DNA of 64,000 nt, from positions 84,758 to 148,757 of the forward strand of contig NW_021833076.1 of the NCBI RefSeq assembly GCF_006345805.1, in the 5' to 3' direction. Of this stretch, positions 32,880 to 64,000 are shown piece by piece (positions within the stretch are counted from its first letter, which is position 1; every line of letters starts with the position of its first letter). The DNA is from Octopus sinensis (Eukaryota). The translations under genes and the position numbers were made by a program. Below the pieces are notes generated by a model. The model did no database searches, had not been told where the DNA came from, and saw nothing but the letters and a program-made list of their open reading frames with translations.

Positions 32880-33730
32880 TCAATTGTCAATTGTGTCAAT
32901 TTTTTCTGTTTTTTGAGCCATTTCGAAGTTTATCTTCTGTAACCATTTATCGAAAATATCAATCGTCATCCAAGCATTTTTTGATGCAGTGTACAAAACC
33001 TAAAAATAATCTAATACAACATACTCCATAATCTTCAGTTTTTATATTTTTTAAGCATCTTGGAGATTTGAATTTCCCGATAACAAGGGGCTTTAATTTC
33101 TCACCCCCAAGGCTGCAGCATAAAAGAACCGAAACTCGTTCTTTACTTTTTGTTTTACCGAAACAGTTATCATTCGAAGACACAAATGATTTACATGAAT
33201 TCTTTTTGACAAAAAGGGATGTTTCGTCACAGTTGAAAATATCTTTTTTCTCGAATTTATCAAATAAATTGTCGTACTCATTAAAAAAATCTTCGATCTT
33301 ATCTTTGTCGCACAAGTTCTTTTCTCCGGAAATTACTTTAAACAGTCATTCGTGACGTTTTTTAAAACGATCCAACCATCCATTCGATGCTTTAAAATTA
33401 TCGAAGTTAAGGTTCGATGCAATTTTTTGCAACAGTTTTCAGGAGAAATCCTGAAACTGAAATCCCATCTTCTCTCAAATTTTTAAAAACTTCAAAGACT
33501 AATCGATCAATTCGAATAGAAAGATCTGATTCAAAGTTCTTAAACGAGTGTTCATCAGAGCACGTTTCTGCTTTTGAAAATCCTTTTCCAATTTCTTTTT
33601 TAATTCTTGAGACAGTTCCTTTCCCAATATTATATAATCGACAAATTTTTCTTTCAGAAATATCTCCTTTCATTAATGATTCGGAAATCGTTTGCTTCAA
33701 GTTCTGACTAAGCTTCGCTGGCATGCTTAA
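32880..33730 (-). mobile_element. pogo/Tigger transposase remnant (lineage A) with a 25-nt intron
   Basis: HTH-psq/CENP-B N-terminus, FKASNGWLDRFKKRH, IFNCDETSLF, KERVSVLLCC..GGEKLKPLVIGK, spliced YG|VLYTASKNAWMT. Confidence 0.88.
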
Positions 33731-33795
33731 AAATATTTAAAAATTAATAAAATAAAGAATAAAAATGAAATAATAAATTTTAATATTATCGATTA

Positions 33796-34249
33796 GCCCC
33801 AGTAGCTGAAGACTATGGATGTTGGAATTCAAACGTCGTGGGTTCGAATCCGATAGAACCAAGTTTTCAGCCGGGGTCAAATCTTGTCAACGTTCCCCAC
33901 CCGTGAGGCGATGAGTCCATCTGGCACGACACAGATGTCGAAAGGGGGACCTCCTACCTTCCCCTGATCACATTACCGATGAAGAATCTCCATTATGCAA
34001 AAACCCGTCCGGATTCAAATGAAGTGCGGTGAGCTACGGTAAGAGGCTGACAAATGGGAACTGGACATACCAGAAATTCCCCACCTCTCTTTGGAGACGG
34101 ATGGCTGTAATGAAGATTTGGAGGCTAATGTTGATCGGCACAAGCAATCCCTTCGTTCCTTGCTCCTTCATTTGATTAGTTAGTTGTGACTGTTTGTGCT
34201 GGGCTTGCCATGTTGTGCAAGCTTGGGGGTTATAAATAATAATAATAAA
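33796..34249 (+). mobile_element. tRNA-derived SINE (about 450 bp)
   Basis: tRNA-like head GCCCCAGTAGCTGAAG..., perfect B box GGTTCGAATCC (33841-33851), (TAA)n tail, second diverged copy at 20.36 kb; no clear TSD. Confidence 0.7.
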
Positions 34250-34479
34250 TACAGTGTTTGCAATGCAAACAAAAGCAGCTGAAGATGAAGGCTAACTACT
34301 TTAATTGAATAGCCAAAATTGACGCTAAAATTATAATTTGACAAATTCTGATGACGTAAAGCATCCCAGTGGATATCAACACATTGTTAATAATATCACT
34401 CAATTTAATAAGTGCCACATTTCAACAAAGATTTGAGATGTTAAAATGATTTTTGGTATAAAAAGAAACCCACTTTCAG

Positions 34480-34720
34480 AACTGTCGAATAAACATGTTT
34501 AGTAACTAATGACTTGGAGATCTCAACTCCCAGTTTGGATGCCTTATCCACTGTCGTAGGCGGCCTTGATCTCTGAAAGTTAAGTTTCCAAAACTTGCAA
34601 AGTAACACTGGAAGTTTTGTAACCATTTGCAACAGCATGGCTATGTGAATCTGGATTTTCATCTTTACTATATATAAAAAAGAAACTCTCTTGGTTTTGA
34701 AAAGAATTGCATTGGCTAGA
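34480..34720 (+). mobile_element. hAT transposase C-terminal remnant
   Basis: KFPKLAK...PFATAWLCESGFSSLLYIKK with stops. Confidence 0.65.
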
Positions 34721-34779
34721 ATTTGATCTTACTCAAGATGTACTTCACCAGAATTATTCATGAGAGAATGCAGGGGAAA

Positions 34780-35560
34780 GTACCACATGTGTACAAGCAT
34801 CCATTGTTTTTATTGGTCAATAAAATACGCTTCCTGAAGGGAGCATGGTGTGGTTGTCCTTGATGTGCTCAGTGCAACTGGGGAGGCCATGAGGGAGTTG
34901 TTGATGGAGCCTGGAGTGTAGAAAAAGGAGGACCTGCCTCCCGGACTGTAACACCGTGGATGTTGCCTACTCTCTCACTGCCGGCCGAGTCAACGAAGGA
35001 CAGCTGAGTGAGTGAATAAGGAAACATACTACATTGAATATTGCATAACTGGGAGAGGACGTGGGATTGAGGGCAGTCAAGCACACTCGCTGTTGTTTGT
35101 TGCCTGCCAGTGGAGAGGACTGAGAGAATGGAGACGTACTGCCTCAATTTCTCAAAAGTATAATTGGGCAGTAAAGAAAGGTGAATCCGAGTGGGAAAGT
35201 GGTGAAGGTGGGGATACTGGATAGGAAAAGTAAGTGAGAAGTAGAAAATATACTTCATCGACACGGGCGGGGGGAGCGCGGACGTCCTTCGCGAAAGTAA
35301 GGAGTGTGGTAAATGGCAGGGAATGGGGGAGTAGCGGCTGATTCCGAAGAGGACCCTGACGATATTCGAGATATGGACTGGGAATGTGGAATTATGGGAA
35401 AATGCGACTGTGGAGGTTGTGGGAGTGAGTGACTGGCAGTCTGACCAAGAATTACCTGCAATTGGGGAACAGGAAGGTAAACAAGGCCTTGTAGGCAAAC
35501 ATGGGCAAAGTAGGCCTGTTTGGTCACTCCGAGAGTAACTTTCTGACTGTCTACAAAACG
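34780..35560 (-). pseudogene. Degenerate kinesin motor-domain gene (kinesin-6-like), pseudogene or pseudo-motor
   Basis: LAGNKQQRVCLTALNPTSSPSYAIFN (switch I), LSFVDSAGSER (switch II), EAGSINNSLMA; P-loop region reads GQTASHSL; tiny introns retained; frameshifts. Confidence 0.65.
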
Positions 35561-35660
35561 TGTGTACAGCCAAATTAATATAAATATCTATTTTATTTAA
35601 TTAAAACAAATTAATATAAATCAATATTTGAATTAATCGTTCTTGTTCGTCATTGTGAAA

Positions 35661-36610
35661 ATGCGAATAATAAACAGCAGACAATGCCACGCACCGCAGT
35701 GTAAATTCCAAAGCAGACCCAATTCAAATTACTGCGGAGTTGCCTGTGGAATAGCACTGGCTCACAAGTAAAAGTAAATATAATACTAAGGCGCCTAAAA
35801 GATGCTTTCAAGGACAACGAATCATTAAGAACAGAGACTACCTATGCTGCAGAGTCACACGACCTCACAATTATTGCCCAAATAAAGAAGGATATCGCCA
35901 AAGTTCAGCTCTCCCTTCTCGAGACTGAATCCAGACGGAAGGACCTGCTGGAACTAATCGAAAGAGGAAAGAAAATCCCAATAGAAGACACATATCAGGT
36001 TGCCTAACCCAGTCCCACGTACAGGAGGAGAATGAGAGTGACAGACACGTCATGAATTGTTTTATATGTGGAAGTGAAGTATTGACGAGTGCATATTCCC
36101 GTCATGTCGATAAATGTTTCAGAAAAGTAAGCAAATTGAATGAATTCAGTGCGAATCCAAGACTTTCTGTTCATCTCACTTTCGTTCACGAATGGAGAGT
36201 GTGTTGTGTGATAAATACAGTGCTTCCTCCAAGTCGTACTGCAAGCGACTCAAACTGCTCTGTCCAGTCCATTCCAAGCCATTTCCTGTTGTGGGGATAA
36301 TTAATGTTTAGAGGAGGGCGGAGGAGGTTTGTGGCTTCCCTGATGAGGGGAGTATGGCGTGTGGAGTGAGTAGGGATGTGTACTCGTTTTGTGCCACATC
36401 TGCCAAGAAATGTGGCCTTCATGCTGACTGGGATCGGCTGGCTTTGGGGAGGATAGATTTGGAGAAAGTGCGGCTGGTATTTTAGTTTTGTCAGGTTAGA
36501 ATATCGCCAAGGAGGAGTTGTTTGAGAGGGAGAGGAGGCACAGGATGGAGATTGCATCCAGGGGGGGTATTCCGGCCATTTTCCTTAATCTGACTCAAAA
36601 ACTGAATTAA
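35661..36610 (+). CDS. CXXC1: CXXC1/CFP1 (Spp1) COMPASS subunit, C-terminal Set1-interacting half only
   Basis: RQCHAPQCKFQSRPNSNYCGVACGIALA, coiled coil, CFICGSEVLTSAYSRHVDKCFRK, LCDKYSASSKSYCKRLKLLCPVH, EVCGFP, FCATSAKKCGLHADWDRLALGRIDLEKVRL. Confidence 0.85.
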
Positions 36611-37128
36611 TGAATTGGGACTGTCCTGGGTGACCATGTTAAAATATTTATTATTTTTTTCGAATTCGAAATAAATTAGAAATTATAATAATTATGGATT
36701 TTTGAAAATGTTTTTTTTTCTTCTTATCTCTGATAATAAATTTGTCTTTTAGCTGATTTTCGAGGACGTAAATTCTTATTCTGGAGGTTAATAATTCGAT
36801 TTCTAACTCGTTTAGAATATCTGTTGATTTGTATTCTTTGCCCAATCTTGTGTTTCTGATTTGTAGGGTTTGTGACATGAATGAACCGAACTTCAATTTG
36901 AATTTTGTGACCCAATTTGATTTATTTAAAAATTATTTAATTTACTTAAATCAAGTAAAAAATAATCAGAGTTTTTAAAAGTGTTAAAAAAACAAAATTC
37001 TTTAAACTTACTAAATTAGCTGAGTATTGAAATGAGTAAAAAATGATGTTTTATAATAAATTTTTAATAGTAAATTCAGTTTCATATAAAGAAGAATTAA
37101 AAATGTTAAAACCAAGTGAAATAGAGTA

Positions 37129-38448
37129 ATGCTCAGCCAAGTTGAACAAACTTTCTTCTCTAAAAACTCTGAAGGATGGACAACATTTTACAAAGTATAG
37201 TCCAGTTGACCACCTCAGAGACAAATATGCGAGTTTTCCTGCAATCACTACGAAGAATGCTCTCATGCCCAACACTTTATTAAAAACCGGAAGAGAAACC
37301 GTTATTCGGACATTCTGCCTTGTTGTGTGCCATTTCACATTATAGCTGCCAAGAACAGAGTCATTTTGAAGAATGTTTCAGAAGACTACATCAACGCCAA
37401 TTATATAGTTATTGGACAAGTCAGTCGCAAATATATTCTCACTCAGGTTTGGTTTCAGTATTAGTTAGGCCCCTCTTGATTACACTGCCGGACATTTCTG
37501 GCTGATGGCACTCCAGAACAAGTCAGAGACCATCGTTATGCTTACCAAATCAAATGTGTCTTTATAAATATAATTTATAGACAGAGCGCTACTTTCCAAC
37601 CAGCACAGATATAGGGATGGTTTTCCCCACTGAGGATATATCCGTACAGTTGGTTGATGTACAAGCCTACCCCGCCTTTGTGTGGAGAAACATGCGAGTG
37701 GAACATAAGGTTGGGTTAATTGTATTTTTGAAGGAACAAGTCCTGTTTGTGAGGCACTACCAATTCGACTGCTGGCCTGATTTCGGAATTCCTGACGATT
37801 TAACTGATTTTATGCAGTTTCTGGCCTTTCTTCGGTCGAGGAAGGATCTTGAAAGTTCTAAAATGCCTATAATACACTGCAATGCTGGGGTCGGGAGATC
37901 AGGATGCTTTGTTCTGATAGACTCGACCATTTTGGAGGTAAAGAGTGGTCCGTATGTCTGATTGAGTTGTATTATCAAAATGAGAGTTCGATGCAAGTCG
38001 ACGTTGAGCAGAATCTTATTAATCTGAGAAGACAGCAATTTCACCTCGTCAAGTCCCCGTCTCAACTTGCTTTTTGTTACCAGGTCGTCTTGGTCACGGG
38101 AAAACTCATTTTGGAAGGTCACGATTGGATTTTCAACGTTTTTGTTAATATTGACTGTAGTACCTGGGAGACGGTCTCCAGTCTTGTTCTGTTTCGGAAA
38201 GACGTCGAAACAAATCTGATGATGAGTGGGACGAGGAAGAGTCCTCGGATGATGAAGGAGTTATTTACACGTTCTTTTATTTTAAATATCTTAGAATTGA
38301 TGAACAAGATTTTAGTATAGCTGATTTATCTGCTGAGTGTTCAGAGGGGTCTTATCCTCGTTGGGGCATTTATTTAAATTGGTACACTCTGGCTGGGATG
38401 TCGTTGATGTTAGCCATTTGTGTGTCTTTATATTATAAGATTTTTTGA
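37129..38448 (+). CDS. Non-receptor protein tyrosine phosphatase, PTP1B/TC-PTP-like, with C-terminal hydrophobic anchor
   Basis: KRNRYSDILP, DYINAN, YILTQGPL, TIVMLT, WPDFGIP, IHCNAGVGRSG; tail WYTLAGMSLMLAICVSLYYKIF. Start may be 37103. Confidence 0.88.
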
Positions 38449-38513
38449 TGTAATATAAAAAATTAATTGTCCTTTCCATGTGTTAAAAAGAGCTCCTAGA
38501 AATAAGTGGCCTA

Positions 38514-40430
38514 CAGTAAAGCCTCTGGTGCTCGCCACCTCTGTTACTCGCCACCTCTATTGCTCGCCACATATTTTTCAAAAAATTAAAAATTTCTAGT
38601 AAATTTTGATAAATATTCTATTGCTCGCCATTTTCTAAATCTCGCAATTAATTTTTTAAAATATTTTTTTGGTTAAACTATTTTTTATAAAATATTTCAT
38701 CCACGCTAAATTCAATATGCGTAAGTGCGCAAGATTGTCTTTTAATGAAAAATGTCGCATTATTGCGTACATGGAGGAGAACAAAAGTCTCACGATGGAC
38801 CCTTATAGCTTACATTTTTTCTTCTGTTTTGAAGAACAAAATATCTCGAAGGGCTGTGAACGATTTAAGACTTGGAAAAGAGAAAATAATGTCTACTGAT
38901 CCTATTTTCTCCAATAAGAAGAGATTATCTAATCTAACTTATTCTGTTATTGACACCGAACTATTAACTTGGATGGAATATATTGAGCTTAGAGGGGGGT
39001 TTCTGGACGATAATTCAATTTTGTTGAAAGAAAAGAACATTGCTAATATTTATGGAATTAAAGAGTTTAAAGCCAGCAATGGATGGCTAAGCAAGTTCAA
39101 GATACGGAACAACTTAAAATTGAGGACTTTACATGGAGAATCAGGATCTACTGCAGTTGATCAGAAACAAGAAATTGATGCATTTACTTCTTTGATCTCT
39201 GCAAAGATTCGACAATATAATGCTGAAAACATTTATAACGCTGATGAAACTGGGATTTTTTACAAATCTATCCCTTCAAAAAGTGTTTGTCAGAAGGTCC
39301 CATATGGACATAAAATCCTTAAAGAATGGTTTAATTTTTATTTATTTTTTTAGATTTTCTTTGTTGCTATGCTCAAATATGACTGGGACAGACAAAAAAT
39401 TCTACTTATGATTGGAAAGTTCCAGAAACCTCGCTGGTTTAAAAATTTTAAAGTCGAAAATTTTGTCGATTACTGTCATTCACCAAAAGCATGGATGACA
39501 AGTAAAATTTTTAAGGAATGGCTTTTAACATGGGATAGGCATCTAAAGAAACGAACAAATTCTTTTAGTTGTAGATCGATGCCCATCCCATAAACTTTAC
39601 GCTGATTTACAGTCAATTGAAGTTCTTTACCTACCTTCGAAGACTACAACAATTCTACAACCAATGGATCAAGGAATCATTAGATCCTTCAAAGGACATT
39701 TTAATAAACTTAAATTTGAGTTAATGTTAGAAAAAATTGAAAATGGAAAAAATCCACTGGAAGCACATAAAAAATTAACATTAAAAGACGGTCTTCTTTT
39801 TACATATTTTGTCTGGAAAAAAGTAACGACCAAAACAATTACAAATTGTTTCGAACATTCAAAATGGATCGAATGTGAAAATCAACTCGAAAGACCAACT
39901 GTTGAAATTGATAATTATGATCAAATGGTAAATATCTTGAAAATATTGGACCGTCTGGATAAAGATGTTTTTATTAATCATGAATTTACCGAAATAGATG
40001 AAATTGAAGATTACCTTAATATTGCTGGAGATTCTTTTTCACAAAAATATGACGATGAAGATACTCATAATGACGAATCTCATGTGAATTCAGAAGAGGC
40101 TTTGAAAATGTTGAAAAGAATAAAGTCATTCTTTTATCAAAATGAAAATTTTGATATAAATTCGTTGGAACTAATCGACACCGTTATTAGAAATATGGCT
40201 GAATTAAAAAAAACTATTAAATATTTTTTTAGTTAATTTTTTCCTTTTAATTTCTTTCAATTCTCTTTGTTTCTTCGCTCAAATATGACTTGAAAGGCTC
40301 ACTTATGATCGGAAAGTATCGAACACGGAGATGTTTTCAAAATTTCAATGTCAACAAATTTATTGATTATTTATATTGCTCGCCATTTTTTCTTCGGTCC
40401 CGAAAATGGCGAGCAATAGAGGCTTTACTG
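38514..40430 (+). mobile_element. Complete pogo/Tigger element (lineage B, 1.9 kb) with 25-nt intron
   Basis: TA TSD, TIRs CAGTAAAGCCTCT..TGCTCGCCA, FKASNGWL, YNADETG, PKAWMT, LQPMDQGII; subterminal CTCGCCA repeats. Confidence 0.93.
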
Positions 40431-40879
40431 TACCTTTATTTTGTGCATCAATTTATCTACGAATAAAACGCCTCATCTTTATCTTATTTTTTCCATGTGA
40501 ACAGAAACCTCTCTGACGACTAATCTACGGAGACAATTAAAAGAAAACACCAAAATACCGTAGATAATATGGTCCAGGATGTGCTTGGAGCACATGAAAT
40601 GGTCACTGGTGACTTCTTAGTTCATCTTCTATCGTTCCAGGGCTTAATTGACAAAGTTAACAGTGAAGACCGGAAACAATGGGCTTGTGATGTCGTCAGT
40701 TTAAAAGGATACCCAGGGGTGGATGGCCACTAATTACCCAGTCCTTCAATAAGAAGTTTGGGACATCGAAATCGGTAGCCAACCTCAAGGCCTTGCTTTC
40801 AACTAGAAATGCTGGAAACCCAGTATGTGGCCTGCTACCTGAACAGGCTGAAATCTCCATTTTTGGAAAATGTTTTGAA

Positions 40880-41969
40880 GAATTTTGTTCACAAATTGGG
40901 CGAATACGTACAACCGAAAGGAAGCTCCGTTTCCCAACAAGGAAAATTCCAAGAGAACTGTTGAAAAAGTGATGAAACCACTACTATATACGATAAAGAG
41001 AAAAGGAGAAGGCTCAGGACGCTTAAAAATCGTTTTTGCTTCAAAGTTCCTTAAAAAACGTATATAAAAGTTGGAAATCAAAAACTGCGTTTTTTTACCC
41101 TAGAAGAAAGTGAACTAAAGTTAAAAATTATTGAGGTATTCATTTTAAAACAATTGAAGATCGAGCATATGAATACTCATTTTGGTAGAGACAGAAATAT
41201 ATTCGGTAACAAGGGAAGAAATTTGTAGTGTGATAGAAAAATGTGTCTATTGCCAAGTAATGTTGTTAATCAATGTCGAAAATTTCATGGCAACAAAACC
41301 AACTATCACCTCCATAATTCCAAGAGGACCTAGAGATCGATATATTCCAGATTTAGTGGATCTAAGAGATATTCAAACTTTAACAGCAATTATGGATGCG
41401 TCTTTTTTGGCAGGTGGAGAGGTTTCTTATAGTAAATTTATTTGTAGGTTTAATCAATCAAGGAATTTTATCAAGAAATTGTATGCAAGTATAACACTAC
41501 ACAACATGAAACTACGAAATGAGCCCTTTTCAAAATTTTTATGGGGGATAAAAGAGATTCGGAAATAACAGAAGATCAAATAAATGCATTGTTAATGTTC
41601 GACGGAACAAATGCAGAACTAAGTGATGAGTCAAATTCGAATTATTTTGAGAATGACGATAAAAGTATTGAGAAACAAGTACATGAAAACCTTGTTAAAG
41701 CTGGAGAGAAAATGAAAAAACGTCGTAAGTGAAAATATGACGCAGAAGACATTGAAATTGGAGATGCAGTGCTGCTGAAACACGACAGGGATGATAACCC
41801 CGGTAACCGTAGATACCCATTATATGACGAACTGAATATAAATAAGTACACATTTTCAGAAAAATTTGAAACTACGTGTACTATTAATAAAGATAATGGA
41901 GAAACAGTATCAAACGTGCATCTAAGTAGATTAAAAAATTTGATTAAAATTTTGAATTTTTTTAAATGA
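40880..41969 (+). mobile_element. Ginger2/GIN-like integrase remnant
   Basis: HMNTHFGRD...VIEKCVYCQ (H2C2), RGPRDRYIPDLVDL, C-terminal IEIGDAVLLKHD...VHLSRLK; internally deleted. Confidence 0.65.
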
Positions 41970-42169
41970 ATTAATTCTTTATTTTTTGTTGGCTGCCATT
42001 AAATAAATCATATTTTATTTATTTTAAAAATGTATACCTGCAAATGAATGATGTGTGATTTATGTAGCACACAGAAATATAAAAACTAATTAAAAAAAAG
42101 AAGAAAATCAAGTTAATTATATTTTCAGATGATTTTTAGATTATATTTATATTTTTATGCAGGACAGTG

Positions 42170-43766
42170 CACATATGAAAGCCTCACCAACAAGACCAGA
42201 CCTAAGAATAACTGCGAAGAATTAATGAAGGGGAAAATCGCCAAATTTAAACTACAGCTTGAGCAAGTCCTAACTGCTAACGAAATGATGATGAAGAAGA
42301 AACTCGCTGACGAACAGCGTGACACCTTGTGGCTAACAAAAATCAAAAAAAGGAGATATCGATAGGATTGTTTCTTTAATCCGGGATAAGATTAAAATCA
42401 TGGAAAAGAAAATGAGGGTTTACGACTCAAGAAAGGAATTCAAAAAAGCGAATTGGTGTTATGAACTAAATAAAGACGGTTCTATAGATCAGTCAGTGGG
42501 AATAATAAGAAGGCGGTAATTAATTTTAATCAAGGACCACCATCTGGAGTAAACATGAACGGAGAGAAATCATTTTTCCGGTTACGAAAAGAGTCATTGG
42601 CTCTGAGAATACTTTTGCCGAGTTTCCAATGAAGGAATTATTGATATTATAAAAGCTTTCCCAAATTGAAAAGAAAGCGGATTTGATGGAGTTTAAAACT
42701 TTTTATAAAGAGCTTCACTGCTGTCCTGAGACCAATTACGTGTATACCCAACCTGTATAAACTGATGACAAAGTGTGTGAACAGCAAATTATCCGAATAT
42801 ATCAAAGCATATGGTCTTGTTAGCGACAATCACCTTGGAACACGAAGAATGTGTCAAGGAACGAAGGAACAGGCAATCTTAAATTATTGTATCAACCAGC
42901 AAAATGAGAATAAGCTATTTTGTATGTGGATTGATGTGAGGAAAGCATTTGACTCAGTCGACCACGAATTCTTAATCCAGACCCTGCAAAACTCTGGCCT
43001 CCCGTGTTGGATGGTAATGTTTATCAAGAAACTCACTACCAAATGGAAAATTAGTATAAATTTGGAAAACAGAACACTGGGAGAAGTTAAATCAATAGAG
43101 GTATACTGTAAGGAGATTCTCTCTCACCTCTGATCTTTGTGCTGTTGATGGACCCTCTAAGCCGAATGCTCAACAGAAAATTTCCGAAAGTAATGATGGG
43201 AAACTCAGCCCCATATGCTACTAACCATCTTCTTTTTATGGACAATATAAAGCTATTTTCGCGTGTCTATGGAGAAGCATCGAAGAGGATTAAAAACCTG
43301 ACCCAAACTAAATTAAATTCTGTGAACTTGCTCAAGGCTATAAAGTTTATAGTTATAGAGTCTATAACTATTATATTGGTTTGATTGATATTGAGCCTGG
43401 AGAGTTCGAGCAGATCGATAAAAATATTCGTCGAATTCTTATGGACAATAATATCCACTTGAAACCCCCAAACAAAGAAAGACTTTGGAGAGGCCTGAAG
43501 TCGGTTAGTAATAAGTCTGAGAAAATGCTTCTTCAATTTTATGGTGATTTGAAACATAAGGCAAACTACTGCCTAAGAAGAGCAGGAATTCTGCGGGTCA
43601 TCAATTCAAAGAAAACGCATATGGCCACTATCGTAGAATTCTTGTCTCGAAAATACAATGAAAATGTGAATGAACTGAAAATATCGGACCTGGTGAAACT
43701 TCAACGTGAATAACTGGAAAAATCGAAAAGAAGCCCTTGCACTCTACTTTGTTTGAATGTCTAAAG
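42170..43766 (+). mobile_element. R4-like non-LTR retrotransposon, deleted RT fragment
   Basis: CQGTKEQAILN, WIDVRKAFDSVDH, NHLLFMDNIKLF, HLKPPNKERL; ends abruptly at the hAT. Confidence 0.85.
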
Positions 43767-44267
43767 CAGAGGTTGTCAAACGGTGTGCCGCGAGACGATT
43801 TCTAGTGTGCCGCCTGACAAATACAAATTTGAACAATTTTTTTCTCCAAATTAATTCAAAAAGATAAACAAATTTCGCTATTTAATGATCGATCCTTAAG
43901 ATTAAAGATGACGGAGTTAGATATTGGAGAATTCTGGATATATATTTAAAACATATCCCAGTTTATCAAAACAAGCACTGACCATAATTTTACAGTTTTC
44001 AACGACCTATTTATGCGAAGCAGGTTTTTCTAAGCTGCATAATATGAAATATAACAAACGCGAAAGTTTGAGAAACATTGATGCTGAAATGCGGGTGGCT
44101 TTGTCAACCATTCGACCTGATATTGATGATATATGCAACAACAATAATAATTAAGTCTTAATTAGTTTTACATATCTTAAAAATTTATTTTTTTTATTTT
44201 TAATGTGCGCCGTGGATTATTTTTTTAAGATTAGTGTGCCGCGAGAATTATTTTTTGAAAAGCTCTG
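43767..44267 (+). mobile_element. Non-autonomous hAT (Buster-like), 501 bp
   Basis: TIRs CAGAGGTTGTCAAA / TTTGAAAAGCTCTG, subterminal GTGTGCCGCG, remnant FSTTYLCEAGFS; flanks GTCTAAAG and TTGTAAAG match 6/8. Confidence 0.85.
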
Positions 44268-44652: not shown

Positions 44653-44770
44653 AAACCAGACCTAACACTAGAGACCCCCATCCTGACTTGGATGACGCGA
44701 ATTGGTAGTCTAGTCAATTTGGTCATTTCTTCCAATGTATGACGCGATGGCTTTCTTTCACTTTCGTACA
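44653..44770 (-). pseudogene. Duplicated fragment of the LHX homeobox including its intron
   Basis: Near-identical to 56599-56715 (YESERKPSRHTLEEMTKLTRLPIRVIQ|VWF), same orientation. Confidence 0.9.
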
Positions 44771-45597
44771 TCATATGGTAAAGGAGCACTCACAACTTGA
44801 ATCCATCATATGATCGTCCCAGGACCAACTTTTGGGTGGAATAGGCGAGAGTGCCACAGGCGAAGGTGCGGAAACTGTTCGGGTTTATATTTTAGCTTGG
44901 AGAATACTCGAAAATATTTACCCCAAGTTATGTCACATGTGCCGTTAATTTATTATATAATTTTTGTGAGAAAATAAGAGACTCTTATCCTGAAATAGAT
45001 TTAATGATAGCTACTGTAGAAAATTAATTAATGACTAGAAAGTCCTTATTAAGCCAATTGCGATCTTCCATTGCGGAAGGTACAATTTATCTAGCTATAA
45101 AAAGTGTGCAAACATCAGAGTAACAAGAGAGAAATTAATAAACGTGTCTAATTTTAGTTAAATTAAATTTTTTTTTATCAAAAGATAACTTTATTTCTTG
45201 TCAATTTCTAGTTTTTAATACAAAAAATTCACCAAGTTTCCAGATTTTTGGGGGTAGCCAAAGACGCCGAGATTAGTCGTTTTGATGAGTTTTTGATTGT
45301 CACTTATGATTTCAGACTTGTCTATGTACTTAATTAAACAGTCAATAAAATACTTGTTGAGGAAGCAACTTATGTTATTACCACGGAGGAAATCAAATAA
45401 AATCTCTTGGAATTCATTAGCACAGGTGTTCTCAACCGGGGGCGAAAATGTTGTACAGGGGGGCGATAATATATTTAATAAAATATTCGAATTTTAATAT
45501 AATTCAAGTATTTATAATAATGTTTCAGATTTATTAATATTTTTTCTATAGTGTTTATCCTTAAATTTTATATTTAAAATTTACATTCTTGTTTGGT

Positions 45598-47386
45598 GAA
45601 CAAGACAAACTTCACTAACAAACTCGACTTAATAGCTGCAGGAATTGAACAGCTAAAGGACTCTTCAAAAATGTTTACGGCAACCGCCTACTCAACAGGA
45701 AAAAACAAACTAACAAACTCAAAATCCATGACAGCAATGGAAGATTCATCACAAATCCCAAAGAGCAGGCTGAATATATAGCCTCGTATTTCGAGAGTAT
45801 ATTAACCGCTCACGGAGAAATATCCGATTACACCAGCGGATACACCACTCATCTCAGCCTACCTATCACCACCGGTGAAGTATCAACTGCAATAGCCAAA
45901 CTTAAAAATGGCCGCTCCTCTGGACCGGATGGAATAAATTCAGAACTGTTTAAATACGGACCGCCTGCACTAACAGACAAACTGGCGGAGCTACTCAATG
46001 GTATGTTTATGAAAAAGGAATTCCTCGGTCTTGATTCCGGATTATTAATACCGATCCAAAAGCCTAACAAGCAGGCTGGGCCTGTCGAAAATCTACGCCC
46101 TATAATCTTGCTAAACACCTTACGGAAACTTTGGGATTAGTTACACTGAACCGAATAAGAGAACAAGTGGACAACTATCTATCCCCGAGTCATAGTGGAT
46201 TTAGGACAGGAAGATCCACCGCCGATGCTGTCTGGGCCACAAGTGGTACTGCGCTATCACCCAGAGATACAAAAGTGCAACAACAGTCCTGGGAATAGAC
46301 CTGTCTAGGGCCTTTGACACGGTACGCCGTGGTCTACTCCTCAAAATACTGGAACATTCCTGGACCCTGACTCTGTCAATATGATAAGAGTACTACTATC
46401 GAACACAAAGCTCAAGGTGCGGGTCGGCACGGCGTTTTCCCGTGAATTCACGTGCAACGTCGGTACCCCTCAGGGAGACGCCCTCTCGCCGTTGCTATTC
46501 GTGATCTATCTGGAGACGGCACTACGAGACCTTCGAAAATTCTATGCTGGCAATATCGTCGAAATTGTATATGCAGATGACGTCGACTTCGTGTCAGACG
46601 ACAAATCGGCCTTACTTCGACTCCTTGAAGTGGCACCTGCTGAGCTGAACAGATGGTTCCTTAAAATGAACGTTGGAAAAACCGACATCGTTGAAATCAT
46701 GAGGATGGAGAGCAGCTCAAGTGAAGCCTGGCGCAAAACGAACAAACTCGGTTCTCTACTTGGGGACGGCCATGATATTGTCAGAAGAAAGGCTCTCGCT
46801 TGGGCCACGATGAACAAGATAAAGAAAGAGTGGATCGGCAAACGACGACTCTGTACGTCACTTCGTCTGAGGATGTATGAAGCCTTTGTCAAACCAATCC
46901 TGACATATAATTCGGCGACCTGGGGAATGTCTAGTACTGAACAACGTGGACTCGATTCTTTTCACCGCAGGCAACTTAGATCCCTACTGGGATTGAACTG
47001 GCCTATAAGAATCAACCAGGAATCGCTATACAATAGATGCAGAACTGGCCCTCTGAGTGTGGAAATCGTTAATATGCGGTGGAGGTTATTTGGCCATATT
47101 CTACGAATGGACATGCTTCCCCAGCTAACATAGCAATGGAGGGCTACTTCCTGAAAGAGGGATCGAGCTTCCGTGGACGTCCACGTGTTACGCTGCCGAA
47201 AACACTTGACGGAGACCTGAAATGTGTGAAGAAAAGGCTAAGGAGTGGTGAGGATCTGGACGAGCTGAGGAAACTCGCTCACGACAGAGGAGGTTGGAGG
47301 AGGCTGGTTCAAAGGATTGTTTTTAATGCTGCACGAGTAAAATTATAACTAATATGATTCTACGTATGTTGCAAATAATAATAATA
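45598..47386 (+). mobile_element. RTE-like non-LTR retrotransposon, RT-only copy 1
   Basis: 13-bp TSD ATTCTTGTTTGGT (45585-45597, 47387-47399), (TAA)n tail, GIDLSRAFD, GTPQGDALSP, YADD, RWRLFGHILR, RGRPR. Confidence 0.92.
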
Positions 47387-47399
47387 ATTCTTGTTTGGT

Positions 47400-48226
47400 A
47401 TCTGAAATGACGAAACTAACCAATAAAGCAATTTCCTCAAGAACAGTTATAAGAAATCTTAATGAAAATGGTATATTTGGACGTATCGCAAAAAATAAGC
47501 CATTTTTGAATATAAGACACACTAAAAAAAGATTAGAAATAACGAAAAGATTCTTGCCATTTCTGATGAAAAATGGAAAACCACAATTTTCTCAGATGAA
47601 TGCATTTTTTACGCCAATCCAAACAAAACTCGAAAAATAGTATATAGGAAGAGCGGTGAACAACTTAATTCTAAAAATATTCAACAACAGTGAAATTTGG
47701 AACAGGTTGATTTGGCTTGAAAACAAAAAATAGGGAAAATCATGATATGGGGATGTTTTTCTTTTAACGGCGTCGGAGAATTAGTTTTTGTTGACGGAAC
47801 ATTGAATTCTGCAAAATATTTAAATCTTTTAGTCAACAGCTACCGAGATCAGTTGCAAAAATGGGACTTAATGACTTTGTTTTCAACAGGATAATGCACC
47901 GTGTCATACAGCGAAGTTAATCATGAATTATTTTGATAAAGAAAATATAAAAACACTAGACTGGCCATCCCAGTCACCTGATCTAAATCCAATTGAGCAT
48001 TTATGGGCTCATATAAAAGCGGAACTCAGTAAAATCGATTTGAAAAATGCTGAAGAATTAAAGCAGGAACTTCTTCATATTTGGGAAAAATTCCTAAATA
48101 TTATATTGAAAAACTTGTTTTATCTATGAAAAAACGTTGTTGGGATATTTTTATGGCAAAAGGAGGAAATACCAGATATTAATTACAAAGTTTTTAATTT
48201 GAATCATTTTTTTTGTCACTGACATA
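47400..48226 (+). mobile_element. 5'-truncated Tc1 transposase (Tc1a) with a 28-nt intron
   Basis: IFSDEC, spliced TVKFGTGKIMIWGCF, FQQDNAPCH, WPSQSPDLNPIEHLW. Confidence 0.88.
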
Positions 48227-48228
48227 TA

Positions 48229-49759
48229 CAGTCTGTACCAAAACATTATAATATTGGCAAATTTATCAATAAATCATTTGTATCTCTACTTATATCAATT
48301 TTTAAGTGTTAATTTTTAGCATGTAATTTCTAAATTGACTTATCTAACTATTCTTAAATAAATTAATTCTTAAAAATATATTACATGCTAAAAATATATT
48401 GTCATGTACCAAAACATTATAATAATTTTTGTCATGTAACAAAAGATTATAATATTTCTAGTATTTGATGTTTTTCCCTCGAGATTTTAGTACAGCATCT
48501 ACTCTTTTTGCATTGATTCATTAAAATTTTTATTTCTTCAATTTTAATTTCATTCCATATGATTTTCAGTTCATTTTTTAGATCCTCTATCGTTTTTATT
48601 CCAAGAGCCATAACTTTTTGTTTCATTATTCCCCAAAGATTTTCGAATGGATTAAGATCAGGCGAATTAGGAGGCCATTTCATAGATTAATTTTTTGGTT
48701 TTGAATCCACTCAATCGTATCTTTTGCAGTGTGTGCAGGAGCATTGTCCTGTTGAAAAATGTAATTACATCCATCATACAACTTTTGACCAGTTGAAATT
48801 AAATTTTTTTCTAATATTTCTCTGTATACTAATCCATTTACAGTTGAATCAATAATTGAAAGCGGGCTCAACCCATTAAAACTCATCGCTGCCCACACCA
48901 TAGCTCCTTTTCTGTAATGAAGCTTTTGATTTATGCATGAAGGATGAATTGTTTCATTTCTTTTACGCCAAACATACGCACCTTTTTCACCAATTGACAG
49001 CAGAAACTTAGATTCGTCAGAAAAAATAACTTTGGACCACTGTTCTATAGTCCAGTTTATTCTCCCTTTAGCCCAAGCTAATCTTTGCTTCTGTTGTTTT
49101 AATGTTAGGAAGGGCTTGCAAACAGGGGTTCTGGAAAAAAATCCCAATTGGTTTAGACGTCTGCTTATTGTCATTCGGCTCAAATTAATTCCATGTGGAA
49201 TAAGTTTTTCGGAAATTTCCTTAATAGAGATGAATCTATTTTCCATCAAAACTCTTTGAATAACTCTTTCTTCTCGTGAAGACGTTAATTTCGGCCTTCC
49301 CTTTCCGACACGATTTTTTTTCTCGTTATTCTGCTTTCGCAACACGTTGGAAACTGATCCTTGTGAGCAATTTGTGATTTCCGCGATTTTGTTTTGACTA
49401 AGTCCAAAGGTATGGAGATTTAAAATAATTTTTTTGGTATCAAATGACAAGTCGCTTTTTTGTCCCTTGTCAATTAAATAATAACGTGTTAAATTTAAAA
49501 TAAATTTGTTTTTGTATGAAAAATATAAAAATTATTATAATGTTATGGTACATGACAGAAATTATTATAATGTTATGGTACATGACAATTTGAATCACCC
49601 CAACCAGTGATCTTGTAAAATCAAATAATTTTTTAAATAGTTAAAGAAAGTAAATTTGAATTTGGATGTAAAAAATTAAGTCATAAAAATGGATATTTGT
49701 GAAAATAGAGTTATATTTTAACTAAATTTACGAGTATTATAATGTTTTGGTACAGACTG
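48229..49759 (-). mobile_element. Complete Tc1 element (DD34E) with IR/DR ends, one frameshift
   Basis: TA TSDs, terminal CAGTCTGTACCAAAACATTATAATA at both ends, three GTACCAAAACATTATAATA-like repeats per end, FSDESKF / QQDNAPAH / SPDLNPFE with 34 residues between D and E. Confidence 0.95.
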
Positions 49760-50655
49760 TACTAACATATTGTGTGTTGTGCTTTTATTTTCCAATTAAT
49801 GTAATTAGCAAATATTTTATTAAAATTAAATCATAATAATTACAACTAATCTACTAAGTTTTTTGAAATTAGAATATTTATAAGATTTTCAAAGAAAAAC
49901 TAAATATGAATTTTGAATCATTTTTTTTGGCGAGGAGTGTAAGATGTCTTCTCGCTCAAATAAGAAAAGTCGTCATTATCAAAACGAATATTTAAAATAT
50001 GGGTTTATTCAAAGTACTGAAGATACAAAACAGCCTTATTGTCTTATTTGTCAATGTTCTTTCTCAAATGAGGCGATGAAGCCATCACGATTACAGGATC
50101 ATCTAAAACGCAAGCACCCGGATAAAATATCAAAGCCGATTGAATATTTTCAAAATTTAAAATACAAGATTATATGTCCTGATTTACATCAATCTTTAAA
50201 TATTGTAATTAAAACAATTAACAGAATAAAAACACGAAGCAAATGTGATCGTCTTTTTAGAAAGTTTTGTAAGGATGCTGGTGAAGATTTTATTCGACTT
50301 TTATTACACACGGAAGTAAGATGGCTTTCAAAAGGAAATGCTTTAGAAAAATTTGTTAATCTTTACGATGCAATAGTCGCATTTTTGCAGACTGAAGAAG
50401 ACTTGGTTTTGGCAGAAGAGATAATTTCACGAAAAAATGATATATTCTATTTGAATTGGATTTTTACAAAATTTAATGAAATTACTATTCTTCTTCAAGG
50501 AAATTTTGTCAACATGATTGATTGCAAAAAAATAATGAAAACATTTGCAAGAAAATTATTGCTTTATCGACATAATTTTTCTATAAATCAGTTTGGAAAC
50601 ATTTCACAACTATCTGAGATAAGTAAATATTTTAGTCAAAACAATATTATGTGAC

Positions 50656-52658
50656 TGACTCAGTTGATCATGATTTTTTGTTTCACGTTTTGGATTGTTC
50701 TGGAATCCCGCTTTGGATCGTAAACTTTGTGAAGAGCGTAGTTAAGAAGTGGGCAGTAAAGCTGCATATGGAAGGTAGAAGAATTGGATCAGTGAAGTTA
50801 AACCGAGGAATTTTACAGGGAGACTCATTGTCTCCTTTACTATTTGTTATGGTATTAGATCCTCTAAGCAGGATCCTTAATTCCGTGTTTCCAAAACTTG
50901 AAATTAACCAGGAAGATCCCAATATGTTAACATATTCTACTAATCATTTGCTATTTATTGACGATCTAAAAATATTTGCTCTCAAACAAGACACTTTACT
51001 CAAAATGATGGAAGCTGTTAACGGATTTTTTAAAATTGTTGGTTTGGAGATGAATTCAGAAAAATCAGCGTCTAATTTGGAATCATTATCATGTTGTAAG
51101 ACTATTGACGGAATCAGTGGATATCGGTATTTGGGTGTACTTGAAGATGGTGGAAGCAATGTTCTTAAGAATAGAGTTATGGACTCTATCTTTGAGAATG
51201 TTAAGAAGAGGATAACTATGCTATCGAAAACAAAACTCAACTCTGTGAATCTGTTTCGTGCTATAAATGAATATGCATTGTCACTATATAAAAATTATAT
51301 TGGGCTAATCAATATTGAACCTTCTGAATTTGATGATATTGACAGACAAATACGGCAATTGCTTACGTCGCTCAGATTACATCTCAAACCTGCAAATAAA
51401 GAGAGACTGTATTTAAACCGGAAGGCTCTTGGAAGAGGGCTTTCATCAGTTACTTTCAAAAGTGAACTAATGCTCTTTCAGTTCCTTACGAGTCTGGAAA
51501 ATATGTCAACTATATGCTTACGGAGGGCGGGGATTCTGCGTGTAATTAAAATGAATAAATGGCATTTGGCTATGATCGCAGGATTTCTATCCTCCAAATA
51601 TGCAATTATTGATAAGAAGAGTATTACTATGGAGTCTCTAAAGTTCAGTCAGATACAATATTTACAAAAGAAAATTAGTTCTAAAGCACTACATTCTGTG
51701 CTTTTCAAATGTGTGGATGAACCTAATGTTGATTTACCTGCATCCTCAGAATGGCTATCTAATGGAAATAATGGGCCACGAAGCGAAGCATTGTATTCTC
51801 TTTTGCAAGATCGAAACTTGTTCTTTGCATCCGCTGACTCATTATGCAATCATTGTAAGAAAAGCAAGAAAACTGTTGACCACATGGCTATCAGTGTGGT
51901 AAAATGCTCAACAGTGATTATCTCCGGAGACACAACGAAGTTGTGAAGTGTATTCACCTTAACTTGTGCCGAATGTATGGACTCAAAAAACAAGACGATT
52001 GAAGGGACATTCTGTTCAGTCAACACTGTCGACGGGAAAAGTTGAAATCAGGGTTGATTCTACAATCCTCACCGAAACAAAAGTAGAATATAACAAGCCA
52101 GATATCTTTGTCCATGACAAAGTCAGAAACGAAATAAATCTAATTGAAGTGGGTATTACTTCACAGGATCGCCTCAAGCAAGTGGAGGTTGAAAAGTGTC
52201 ACAAGTATGACCTATTGGCAAGTGAGCTTTCGCTTCTGTATAGCTGTCAAGTAAAAATAATTCTGTGGTTATGACATGGGATGGAGTTGTCTCGAAATGC
52301 TTCAAAAATTATATGAAGAACTATCTATTGAAGCAGGAACGAGGACATACATCCAATCCGTTGTACTGAAAAGAACGCTCGAGAGTATGATGATCGAACA
52401 CAAGCACGGAATGAAGGTATCTGGTGAAGAATACGCTTCTGCTTCCAACCGGTATGTGGAGATGGCATGCAAAAATGAAGACGACCCATGAATGCTAAAG
52501 AAGATGCAATGGTTGAATCAGATGTGGTAGTGGGGAGTAAGAGGCAGCTGAAAGTAGACTCTTCTTCCAAGAGAAGGAGAGTGGATATCAGCGAGCTGGA
52601 GTGAGATCTGCTTAGTTTCTGATTAACTATTATTTATTATTGGTTTAAAACGTTATAT
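50656..52658 (+). mobile_element. 5'-truncated R4-like non-LTR retrotransposon inserted in the Ginger TIR
   Basis: GILQGDSLSPLLF, LLFIDDLK, CNHCKKSKKTVDH, KPDIFVHDK..LIEVGIT; flanked by duplicated TGTGAC (50650-50655, 52659-52664). Confidence 0.9.
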
Positions 52659-52799
52659 TGTGACATGGGCCAAATGATACGTATGGGATGCGCGTTACAC
52701 TGACCTTCAATTAATGTTAATCTGTCAATTTATCGATAAACTTCAAACACTCTTATTATTCAATTATCTATTACAAAAATAATTAATTTAATGACGCCA

Positions 52800-54260
52800 C
52801 ATATGTGACCACCATGCTCTGTCCTAGAGGACCTTCGCGTAATTATCCCTGCCCTCTCATCTATTGGTCTTGAGATAAACTCTGCCAAATCCGAAGCTAT
52901 AAATCTCAATATCCCACACGGAATTTTTGTCGAAACTATGGCCGTTCTGGAAGATATTTTAAAAGGCGTGCGGATCACCGATAAAAAAAACCTCCTCATC
53001 CTTGGCTCCCCAATTGGTCGCGAGGCTTTGTCTCAAACTCTTATTGACAAGGCAGCTGTTCTGTCATGCATTATTCAAAGACTCTCTCTCATCGACGCTC
53101 ATGTCGGGTTCTTCTTCTCCGTAATTACTTTTCAACTCCGAAGCTCCTATATACATTAAGAAGCTCTCCGTGTTTTCTCGAACAAAATCTCCTTTCCGTT
53201 ATTGAAAATATTCTGAAGTCCGGAGCAGAGTCGCTATGCAACGTACGTTTCGACCCTCTGGGTTGGATTCAATCCACCCTGCCTGTAAGCCGCGGTTGGA
53301 TTGGACTCCGTTCTCCCGTGTCTATCGCTCTTCCTGCTTTCATTTCGTCAACTGCATCATCCGTGTCCTCACTGACATTGTTCTCAGAAACCTACCCGAA
53401 CGAAAAATGTCAGTTGATCACGTGGCCGCTTTGGACCTGTGGGATTCATTGTACACAAAAGACCCAGTGACCCGTGTATCCAAGCTCAATGGGATGCCAT
53501 TTCTTGTGAAGCTCTTGACGTACATCTACGCCAAAATTTCGATCAGCACAGACTTGCATGTCTCCGCGCAGGCTGCTCCACAGGAGCGGGGCCTGGCTGG
53601 ATGCTCTCCCTGTCCCTTCCACCGGTAACCTATTAGACAAAGATTGCCTACGAATTGGTTTATCATTGCGTCTGGATTGGAAATCTGCGAAATACACAAA
53701 TGTCGTTGTGGTGCTGTCATTGACCGTTTTGGTCTACATCCCCTTTCCTGTCGTCGCAGTGCAGGGCGCGCACCACGCCATGCAGCACTTAACGACGTTA
53801 TTCAGAGGGGGCTCACGGCCGCCGGAATTCCATCAATCCTTGAACCCGTTGGGCTTGCGAGGGGAGACGGAAAAAGACCCGACGGCCTATCGACTTTCCC
53901 GTTTGAGTTCGGCAAGTCTCTGTTATGGGATGCGACGTGTTCAGACACTTTCTCGGAGCTCAACCTTCCTTCTTCAGCTGTCGAGGCTGGCTCAGTCTCT
54001 CGCAAAGCCGAGAAGATGAAGATTGGAAGTTACAAGGAGCTCTCTGAACGGTATCGTTCACTCCAACGCCGTCGAGACTTCCGGGGTCATCGGCGAAAAG
54101 TCTCTTTCCTTCTTTCTAAAAGCTTGGCCGCATGATCTCCCATAAACGGGGAGACCCACGCGAGTCCAATTGGCTTTTCGAAAGGATTTCCTTGGCCATA
54201 GTACGTGGAAACTGTGTTTCCATTTACGGGCCGGAAATTTAGTTAGTTAATAACTATTTG
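52800..54260 (+). mobile_element. CRE-like non-LTR retrotransposon, 3' portion
   Basis: LILGSPIG, STPKLLYTLRSSP, QSTLPVSRGWIGLR, SGAWLDALP, CRCG...HPLSC...RHAALND, GKRPDGL...LLWDATC (CCHC + RLE). Confidence 0.88.
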
Positions 54261-56259
54261 TTAATTACATATAACTATCAAAAAAAAAATTAATTTATTA
54301 AGTTTTTAATCCTGTCCATCCCGACAATAGAATTGTCCCATTTGAGTGTTTAATTTATTAAATAAATAAATCTGCGCGATTATTCGACAAAATATTTATT
54401 ATTTCAGCTGGTGGATAGTACTGTGATTCGAATTTATCCAGTCGCAGCGATGGATTAGTTCCAATTAATTCGAATCTATTTATTAATTTTTTATATCTTA
54501 CTTTATCACCGACATTATAATCATACAAACATTCATTTTCCTGTTCATAGCTTTGTAATAATTAGAAGTTTCACCAATGGCTTTCCTTATACATTTGAAT
54601 CCGGATAGGAACATTTTGACTCGGAATTATTTACGTACACTCAACCCTCTCAAATTGGCATCAATGACCGTTAAAATCCATTTAAGTCTATAAGATCTAT
54701 CTGAAAACATTCATTAGGATAAGAAGCAAAAACATGGTGATTTATCCAATCTACAACAAAAAATGCTTATACTTTTAAAGGACTTGAAAATTCACAGACT
54801 TGACAACTTCGAATTACTTTTCTGATTATGTCATTCTTTACAGTAAAGTAGCTTTGTCGGCACTGATATTCAATTTTATTCACTCCTCCGTGAGAACACT
54901 TGTGCAATGTTTTTGCAACAAGCTCCATTTCAGATTCAATATCCATAGTAATGACTAACTTGGATCAGAGGATTTAAGATACAATCTGAAACTTATTGCG
55001 CATTCAAAATACCTTTCATTTATGATAGTAAAATTCTCTATTTTATCAGCAGGCCTATTTTTTTATACCTCAAAAAATTTTCTGGAAATTTACCAGCCAA
55101 TGCATCCTTTAAAATCTCATATTCGATAATGTCTTTAACAAAACCCTTGTAAGAACTCATTACAACAAGATAAAACAAGAAAAAACACGCTAGAAATGTA
55201 GGTTTGCCAAGTTAAAAAATTATAATCTTAATAATTGTTACATTAATAAATTAAAGATAATTCAACATGTTTAAAATCGATTAATTTAATATATTTTTGT
55301 CACTATAAAAAATTAAATTTCGGCTAATCAAAGAATTCTAATTTGACAGTTTCAATGTCAAAAAATGTAACGCGCGGCCCATGCGTAACGCGCTGCCCAT
55401 GTCACATATTATGACATATTGTCAACATTTGACGGAACTAGAAGCGGATATATCTCTTAGATTCAAAGATTTGTTTGATTTGGAATTTGAAGCATGGATG
55501 ATTGATCCGTTTTCATGTGTGCCAGAAGATATGAACGAAACAATCCAAGAAGAGATAATTGAATTGAAATATAATGAAGAATATATTCACAGATTTCAAC
55601 AGGATGGTATCTCTAAATTTTGGCAATCAAAAGATCTACAAATGAAATTTCCAAATTTATGGAAGGAAATGAGTAATGCATTATTGACATTCCCTACCAT
55701 TTATTTAGTTGAAAGTGGATTTAGTTTTGTCAATCATAATACACAATGTGAAAGAAATAGACTGGAAGTGTGTTATAGAGGCGATATACGCCTAAAGTTG
55801 TGCAGAATTAAACCCGACATAGAATATTTAGCGAGTAAACATCAATATCAAGGGTCTCACTAATAATTTTTAATAAAAATTCAATTTTTTACATTTGATT
55901 TATTATTTTATATTTTGATTTTTGAGTTATATACAAAAAACAACCAACTAAAAGACAATGCCCAAAAATTTTTAAATTGTATGTGGACAAGGGGGCGATA
56001 AAATATCTAAGGGGGCGATGAACAAAAAAGGTTGAGAATGCCTGCATTAGCAGATCACGCCTTAATCTCTAAAAAAAACTCCTGGAAAGAAGATTATTTT
56101 TGATCTCCTGGAAGAAGCGTATTTCGAAATCACTGTTTGGAAGTTTAGGAAAGTAGGAGAGAAATGAGAACCATTTCGGTCGACAATTCTAATACTAAAC
56201 CTTAGACAAAGTGCAATCTGAACATTTTAAACAACTACATTTATTAGACTAGCAGAATG

Positions 56260-63980: not shown

Positions 63981-64000
63981 AACATTTCGATTTTCGATAA

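Follow-up and report, generated by a model that had tools for sequence, protein, structure and literature searches.

Three decayed transposase genes in the 64,000-nucleotide (nt) window analysed here (positions 84,758 to 148,757, forward strand, of contig NW_021833076.1 in the Octopus sinensis assembly GCF_006345805.1) are each interrupted by one insert of 25 or 28 nt that begins with GT and ends with AG. Two of these genes belong to pogo/Tigger elements, hereafter Tigger A and Tigger B, whose homologues carry the name Tigger, and the third belongs to the plus-strand one of two Tc1 copies. We give a probability of about three in four to the reading that these inserts are ordinary U2-type spliceosomal introns of the transposase genes, gained within each lineage and of the size usual in the host genome. 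Each of them lies in its own lineage of the Tc1/pogo group and has its own position within the catalytic (DDE) region. A first-pass annotation, made from the letters of the window alone, had proposed five GT-AG micro-introns at unrelated positions in DNA transposons of three superfamilies. Pfam places Tigger A, Tigger B and the Tc1 copies where it had put them, and scans with family hidden Markov models (HMMs) retain the inserts of Tigger A, Tigger B and the plus-strand Tc1, which occupy three non-equivalent sites in three lineages. Two further inserts, in elements labelled Ginger-like, did not withstand analysis and are discussed below. Furthermore, Tc1 and pogo/Tigger elements are usually assigned to one superfamily (IS630-Tc1-mariner) and the evidence thus concerns one or two superfamilies, not three.

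The homologues retrieved in the searches, 62 of Tigger and 102 of Tc1, served to build the family HMMs. For each site, every deletion of 0-45 nt starting at most 30 nt away was scored against the corresponding HMM, which gave 2806 variants. At the Tigger A site, the best variant lacked 25 nt and scored 207 bits, compared with 199 bits for a 1-nt correction and 157 bits with no deletion; the GT-AG version ranked 7 out of 2806. For Tigger B, the best deletion was also 25 nt, both in the window (293 bits, 278 with a 1-nt correction, 97 with none, GT-AG version ranked 6 out of 2806) and in a second copy carried by another contig, L001 (308, 294 and 99 bits, rank 2). It was 28 nt in the plus-strand Tc1 (111, 97 and 44 bits), with the GT-AG version tied for rank 1 out of 2806. 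The best lengths (25, 25 and 28 nt) beat a 1-nt frame correction by 8-15 bits. Segments of 21-29 nt with GT..AG ends are frequent in this DNA, about 27 per kb and per strand. Therefore, one such segment taken alone proves nothing, and it is its coincidence with the length and position favoured by the HMM that counts. Allowing for the equally good placements (about 21, 9 and 11 at the three sites), the joint chance of a GT..AG version being among them at each of the three sites is roughly 4e-5. All five candidates of the first-pass annotation have a GT 5' end and an AG 3' end. Removal restores the frame and a gap-free alignment in Tigger A, in both copies of Tigger B and in the plus-strand Tc1, and the lengths of these three inserts fall inside the range of 21-29 nt found in a host gene (see below). 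Apart from these inserts, the indels read in these copies are of a single base and fall for the most part within homopolymer runs; no insert of 25-28 nt was found that did not combine GT..AG ends, host-like length and an exact fit to the family model.

Tigger B was once a genuine transposon that multiplied. It has terminal inverted repeats (TIRs) of about 26 bp (CAGTAAAGCCTCT..GCTCGCCA) that begin with CAGTAAAGCC, and it is flanked by TA target-site duplications (38512-38513 and 40431-40432). Its ends were fixed by comparison with L001 (184192-202879 of the 1.03-Mb contig VCDQ01002408.1, GCA_006345805.1), where a second full copy (L001 positions 9975-11928) matches it with 94% identity over 1959 bp and ends at the same points, in other flanking DNA; TA is present on both sides of both copies. 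Moreover, another contig, L003 (VCDQ01001777.1), carries an internally deleted derivative, and the copies found on contigs of the octopus assembly are 91-97% identical in aligned segments. Tigger B was truly mobile, as its TIRs, its TA duplications, its several copies and the derivative with a deletion indicate.

Removing the insert of Tigger B restores the frame and the motif ...KILKE(R)|FSLLLCSN. In L001, the insert also measures 25 nt and differs by one substitution, with GT and AG both kept. The codon at the junction is TG|A (stop) in the window and CG|A (Arg) in L001. This CGA origin of the window TGA had been predicted from the window before the L001 sequence was obtained, and was then borne out. 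The spliced reading of L001, ...KILKERFSLLLCSN..., corresponds to the family consensus, and the CG|A codon makes sense only with the intron removed, which supports the intron. The two copies are broken by different frameshifts. One A-run is defective in both, and every other defect examined in one copy is intact in the other.

The first-pass annotation had listed a third element, Tigger C, as devoid of an insert. In fact, part of Tigger B has been duplicated within its own 3' region (39331-39472 matching 40233-40369 by blastn, 69% identity), and this duplicate, the supposed Tigger C, opens with a decayed intron copy (40232-40259) that has lost its 3' AG. The duplication lies upstream of the 3' TIR and is present in both full copies and in L003. 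Since the two full copies share the intron and the duplicate holds a decayed copy of it, the intron is ancestral to the Tigger B family; it is older than both the internal duplication and the spread of the family. The duplication begins within 1-2 bases of the 5' splice site of the intron and also abuts a ...TATTTTTTTAG motif identical to the intron 3' end; the position of this edge could be a coincidence or could reflect microhomology-mediated repair. Another GT..AG segment, of 22 nt, lies in the N-terminal part of Tigger B (about 38785-38806), and its removal would mend the frame. It was rejected because conserved helix-turn-helix residues would be lost and because L001 shows a 1-nt indel there; it is thus an example of a chance GT..AG segment.

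In Tigger A, which has one A-run frameshift and one in-frame TGA, the insert separates ...IKTEDYG from VLYTASKNAWMT, and its removal restores the frame and the motif ...EDYG|VLYTASKNAWMT. The site differs from that of Tigger B. The plus-strand Tc1 is an old, 5'-truncated copy with several 1-nt frameshifts, boxed between a retroelement that ends at 47388 and the minus-strand Tc1, its own ends having been destroyed by nested insertions. Its insert splits the conserved motif TVKFG(G)G|..IM(I/V)WGCF, and removal gives TVKFGTG|KIMIWGCF in frame. DDE_3 and HTH_Tnp_Tc3_2 domains were found in both Tc1 copies, and TIRs were detected for the minus-strand one. As the first-pass annotation had stated, the latter has no insert at the equivalent site, where ..HYRKGAMVWAAMSF.. 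is contiguous. An intron was also considered, and rejected, at a change of frame within this copy (48683-48686), which is a 1-nt shift in an A-run.

All the transposase copies of the window are dead. Their frameshifts lie mostly in A/T runs and could be real mutations or homopolymer errors of long reads. Furthermore, in-frame TGA codons stand in place of a CGA suggested by a relative (L001, for 39327-39329 + 39354) or by the family pattern (at about 33350 on the minus strand), which fits CpG-to-TpG decay.

Table 1. Positions in the window of the transposon copies, their putative introns, the host gene used as a yardstick and the integrase remnants
Feature	Position	Strand	Description
Tigger A, 3'-truncated pogo/Tigger coding remnant	32898..33724	-	Pfam DDE_1 (3.2e-06), three-frame reading, tblastn
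Tigger A putative micro-intron	33000..33024	-	25 nt, GT..AG, phase 0: gtatgttgtattagattatttttag
Tigger B, complete pogo/Tigger element	38514..40430	+	Pfam DDE_1 (1.3e-26), HTH_Tnp_Tc5 (8.7e-06)
Tigger B putative micro-intron	39329..39353	+	25 nt, 92% A+T, GT..AG, phase 2 in an Arg codon: gtttaatttttatttatttttttag
Internal partial duplication in Tigger B 3' part ("Tigger C")	40232..40372	+	Homologous to 39329-39472
Tc1, plus-strand copy	47395..48182	+	Pfam DDE_3, HTH_Tnp_Tc3_2; three-frame reading; tblastn
Tc1 putative micro-intron	47706..47733	+	28 nt, GT..AG, phase 1: gttgatttggcttgaaaacaaaaaatag
Tc1, minus-strand copy	48227..49761	-	Full length, TIRs of ~240 bp, A-run frameshifts
Further Tigger copy, split by a hAT fragment	59013..61313	-	tblastn; contiguous over the Tigger A and Tigger B intron sites
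Host protein-tyrosine-phosphatase (PTP) gene segment	37325..37966	+	Pfam Y_phosphatase, three-frame reading; five GT-AG micro-introns
PTP intron 1	37325-37345	+	21 nt
PTP intron 2	37447-37468	+	22 nt
PTP intron 3	37556-37580	+	25 nt
PTP intron 4	37710-37733	+	24 nt
PTP intron 5	37938-37966	+	29 nt
Integrase remnant G1	~41100-41950	+	No Pfam match
G1 candidate insert	41136..41159	+	24 nt, GT..AG, in frame, stop-free
Integrase remnant G2	~54361-55150	-	Integrase_H2C2, 23 bits, below the 25.5 cut-off
G2 candidate insert	54751..54772	-	22 nt, GT..AG, contains TAA

Relatives of these elements are contiguous where the inserts lie. Besides the minus-strand Tc1 and the further Tigger copy of the window (Table 1), the Tigger copies of three other contigs (L002, L004 with two copies, and L005) have a coding sequence that is contiguous across the equivalent sites, and no insert was found at these sites in the homologues with contiguous open reading frames (ORFs) used to build the HMMs. 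Among the matches listed, the contigs bearing the closest homologues are short and offer hardly any space for an intron (for instance, 534 amino acids on a 2231-bp contig). Since the nearest relatives have no introns and since the Tigger A and Tigger B sites differ in elements sharing about 29% amino-acid identity, separate gains are favoured. On the basis of these comparisons, the three introns were most likely gained separately within their lineages. The repeated, position-independent acquisition proposed at first hence keeps three separate sites with intron-free relatives and loses the two Ginger-like cases.

The size of the inserts can be compared with that of introns in the surrounding genome. 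From 32.9 to 54.9 kb, nested repeats form a patchwork that surrounds two host genes recognized by Pfam, one CXXC1-like and the other encoding a PTP. Taking five GT-AG segments of 21-29 nt out of the PTP gene (Table 1) brings back the classical PTP motifs in the three-frame reading, and the claim that the transposon inserts are host-sized is therefore sustained. The first of these introns (37325-37345) is in frame and stop-free, so that a gene finder would read through it. A similar read-through is visible on L001, where a PI4KB gene model runs without a break through its first 573 codons, among them an in-frame 24-nt GT..AG piece; we take PI4KB homologues to be shorter at this site. Some of the gene models on contigs such as L001 and L003 fuse a host gene with a transposon (P0025, P0083). 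Harvesting host introns from the gene models of L001-L005 was uninformative since these models use long, probably artificial introns.

The window contains ORFs of up to 522 codons without any of the three standard stops. Since, in addition, the host and transposon domains are legible under the standard code, this eukaryotic sequence was read with it. A ciliate-type alternative code was weighed, since ciliates are known to have micro-introns; the comparison of ORF lengths for different sets of stop codons was not decisive. Look-ups of ORFs of the window as exact proteins retrieved no record. Paramecium-type eliminated sequences were dropped because the host genes carry GT-AG introns. Among animals, introns of less than 30 bp are described only in myxobolid myxozoans and in Dicyema japonicum, whose splice signals have reportedly shrunk to 'GTa' and 'AG' (PMC13644364). 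The median intron of a Dicyema sp. is 27 bp (PMC6543705). D. japonicum lives in the kidneys of Octopus sinensis and its genome has 36.7% GC and 49% repeats (PMC6736024), figures that the composition of the window resembles. In homology searches, the highest-identity matches of the Tigger B protein were gene models labelled Octopus sinensis. The micro-introns, the D. japonicum-like composition and the Tigger B copy on contigs of the octopus assembly lead us to infer that the window most likely comes from a dicyemid. The public O. sinensis assembly appears to include large parasite contigs (up to 1 Mb) annotated as octopus genes.

No micro-intron interrupts the long reverse-transcriptase ORFs of the window (436 and 522 codons), in agreement with the first-pass annotation. 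Two copies of an element of the type without long terminal repeats (45594-47388 and 62188-63984) are 99.2% identical over about 1.8 kb, and their near-equal aligned lengths leave no room for an insert of 25-28 nt. One of the two keeps the 522-codon frame, and their identity suggests a very recent retrotransposition. Cut-and-paste elements move as DNA and an intron travels along with them; retroelements are copied through RNA and do not carry introns. The lack of introns in the retroelements is therefore expected.

Such inserts may have arisen as tolerated insertions. The introns would be 25-28 nt long because all introns of this genome would be of that size, and signals as minimal as 'GTa' and 'AG' may lower the barrier to the birth of an intron. 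A small insertion with GT and AG ends, of about 20-30 nt, could be spliced out and spare the transposase, and the active element would then spread this tolerated insertion to new sites. Each of the three inserts brings a stop or a frameshift into the catalytic region of its copy, so that an unspliced transcript would encode a truncated protein. Any regulatory use of this truncation, by intron retention, is speculation.

Several points weigh against this interpretation. Tigger A and the plus-strand Tc1 are each represented by one decayed copy, in which the insert is seen once; no second copy of either was found in tblastn and homology searches. The HMM does not fix the boundaries of the Tigger A insert, about 20 placements of 25 nt lying within 1.5 bits, and nearby 1-nt frameshifts were patched by hand in the scans of Tigger B, its L001 copy and Tc1. 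Splicing of the three inserts is a prediction from sequence. The tolerated insertion is the most likely route and is itself deduced; no clear trace of tandem duplication or filler was seen by eye at the junctions. In addition, the preference for gain over loss would follow from parsimony applied to a thin sample, and the intron-free relatives on L002, L004 and L005 are not proven to belong to the same genome and may be octopus. A short repeat common to the window and L005 (77% identity) is a hint that these three contigs come from the parasite genome.

One alternative is that the inserts are copy-specific junk in dead copies and were never spliced. All the copies are indeed pseudogenes with several indels and stops, GT..AG segments of this size are frequent and both Tigger A and the plus-strand Tc1 are each known from one copy. 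We nevertheless consider this very unlikely since the Tigger B insert is common to an independent copy and to the older internal duplicate, and since the CG|A codon of L001 is sensible only after removal of the intron. Moreover, the other indels are single-base ones, and a chance of about 4e-5 that sites fitting the family model would all offer GT..AG ends argues against junk. The first-pass annotation had named copy-specific random insertions as the finding that would overturn its proposal; the L001 copy rejects them for Tigger B, and Tigger A and the plus-strand Tc1 are single-copy. Even less probable, in our opinion, is that the introns are ancestral, were brought by horizontal transfer and shrank to the local size, with no gain in this genome. 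The closest protein relatives do come from scattered taxa (microsporidia, rotifers, molluscs and metagenomes), as horizontal spread of these families would lead one to expect. However, the nearest relatives have no introns at these sites, being contiguous on L002, L004 and L005 and lying on short contigs elsewhere.

It was also proposed that selection keeps the introns in the transposons, because they promote export or expression, allow escape from the silencing of intronless RNA, or control dosage by retention, as the third intron of the P element does. This proposal is compatible with ordinary, lineage-specific introns rather than an alternative to them, and we regard it as unlikely. Retention would in each case truncate the protein after its DNA-binding part and each of the three lineages has exactly one intron, observations that are only suggestive. 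Selection is speculative, and intron-free co-residents (the minus-strand Tc1, the Tigger copy at 59-61 kb and the hAT fragments) have multiplied too. Furthermore, intron-bearing transposases are found elsewhere without such an explanation (bioRxiv 10.1101/656579).

The two other inserts of the first-pass annotation lie in the integrase remnants G1 and G2. For G1, the only model that could be built scores the readings with and without the candidate almost alike (5.2 against 5.3 bits), which does not discriminate either way. For G2, removal of the 22 nt shifts the frame and scores 59.9 bits, compared with 79.3 bits for the intact reading, against P0209. In-frame deletions of 15-18 nt fit best (about 89 bits), in line with about six extra residues of G2 relative to P0209 at the candidate site; to reach 84 bits, the 22-nt reading has to assume the loss of one more base from the adjacent A-run. 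P0209, the sole homologue found for G1 and G2, is a microsporidian protein of 458 amino acids with an rve domain, annotated as Gag-Pol. The core is largely deleted in both remnants. Ginger DNA transposons were reportedly described by Bao, Kapitonov and Jurka in 2010. Like Ginger, G1 and G2 are of the integrase type, have an H2C2-like zinc finger and no adjacent reverse transcriptase, and their sole homologue is essentially an integrase. Unlike in Ginger, Pfam detected no rve domain in G1 or G2 themselves, the H2C2 match does not reach the Pfam threshold, and the search for TIRs around them gave only weak A+T-rich inverted matches. Judged from these sequences, both the two introns and the label 'Ginger' are unproven.

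Other features of the window concern its repeats. No micro-intron was found in the hAT fragments at 58-60.6 kb, which show only a 1-nt frameshift and truncations. Another hAT-like transposase is in two parts, with its zf-BED N-terminus at 49944-50654 and its dimerisation C-terminus at 55342-55860; between the two, reverse-transcriptase elements and G2 are nested over about 4.7 kb, and the catalytic middle is apparently lost. Short repeats beside Tigger A are 77-81% identical to one another (33814-33962; 20361-20563 and 34036-34249; L005 11329-11477). In the stretch adjoining Tigger A, a GGTTCGAACCC-type motif resembles the T-arm of a tRNA and suggests that a short interspersed element derived from a tRNA lies here; a scan with ARAGORN found no tRNA gene. 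A 118-bp part of a LIM-homeobox homeodomain occurs twice with 96% identity (44653-44770 and 56599-56715; …KPSRHTLEEMTKLT.LPIRVIQV…); since one of the two copies is within the repeat-rich region, duplication of a gene fragment is the probable origin. Proteins of the amphipod-infecting microsporidia Dictyocoela and Cucumispora (P0003, P0158, P0209) are among the closest named relatives of the Tigger and integrase sequences of the window, a hint that these families of transposons have spread horizontally among parasites and invertebrates.

What is new here is the combination of mobile elements with introns of 25-28 nt at positions that relatives lack; each part was already known. A tentative extension, which we hold to be possible rather than probable, is that dicyemid genomes still create introns and that their spliceosome needs little beyond GT...AG about 20-30 nt apart. 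If this is true, young transposon families record intron births, which could be dated from the divergence between copies and counted family by family. Should a genome-wide survey agree, it would provide dated intron gains in a lineage so far described only as shortening ancient introns, and it would test whether minimal splice signals ease intron creation. For annotation, it means that intact transposases will be called broken in such genomes unless micro-introns are modelled.

Introner-like elements, introns that spread as repeats in some algae and fungi, share recent intron gain with the inserts described here. The three introns are dissimilar to one another by eye and each was found once in the 64-kb window, a small sample. 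Since 25 nt is too little sequence, no introner family could be defined, and nothing points to a mobile intron. Introns in transposases of the Tc1/pogo group are textbook cases, known from Tc1 and Tc3 of C. elegans, Minos and Drosophila pogo. As in these, the transposase genes of the window are interrupted by GT-AG introns whose positions vary by family and whose structure is common within a family; unlike in these, the length is 25-28 nt and matches a host with ultra-short introns. The Tc1-like TLEWI elements of bivalves have 2-5 introns, treated as unusual for DNA transposons (bioRxiv 10.1101/656579). TLEWI elements have no TIRs, exist in few copies and are suspected to be domesticated, whereas Tigger B combines TIRs and TA duplications with several copies and an internally deleted derivative.

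The introns of dicyemid host genes are shortened and lie at conserved ancient positions (Ogino et al. 2010, as presented in PMC6543705; PMC6736024; PMC13644364); the account of them in PMC6543705 makes no mention of transposons. The inserts described here are like these host introns in their length (21-29 nt for the introns of this genome, compared with a median of 27 bp), in their minimal GT...AG signals and in their A+T richness. Unlike them, they lie in mobile elements, at positions that are absent from relatives, and look newly gained.

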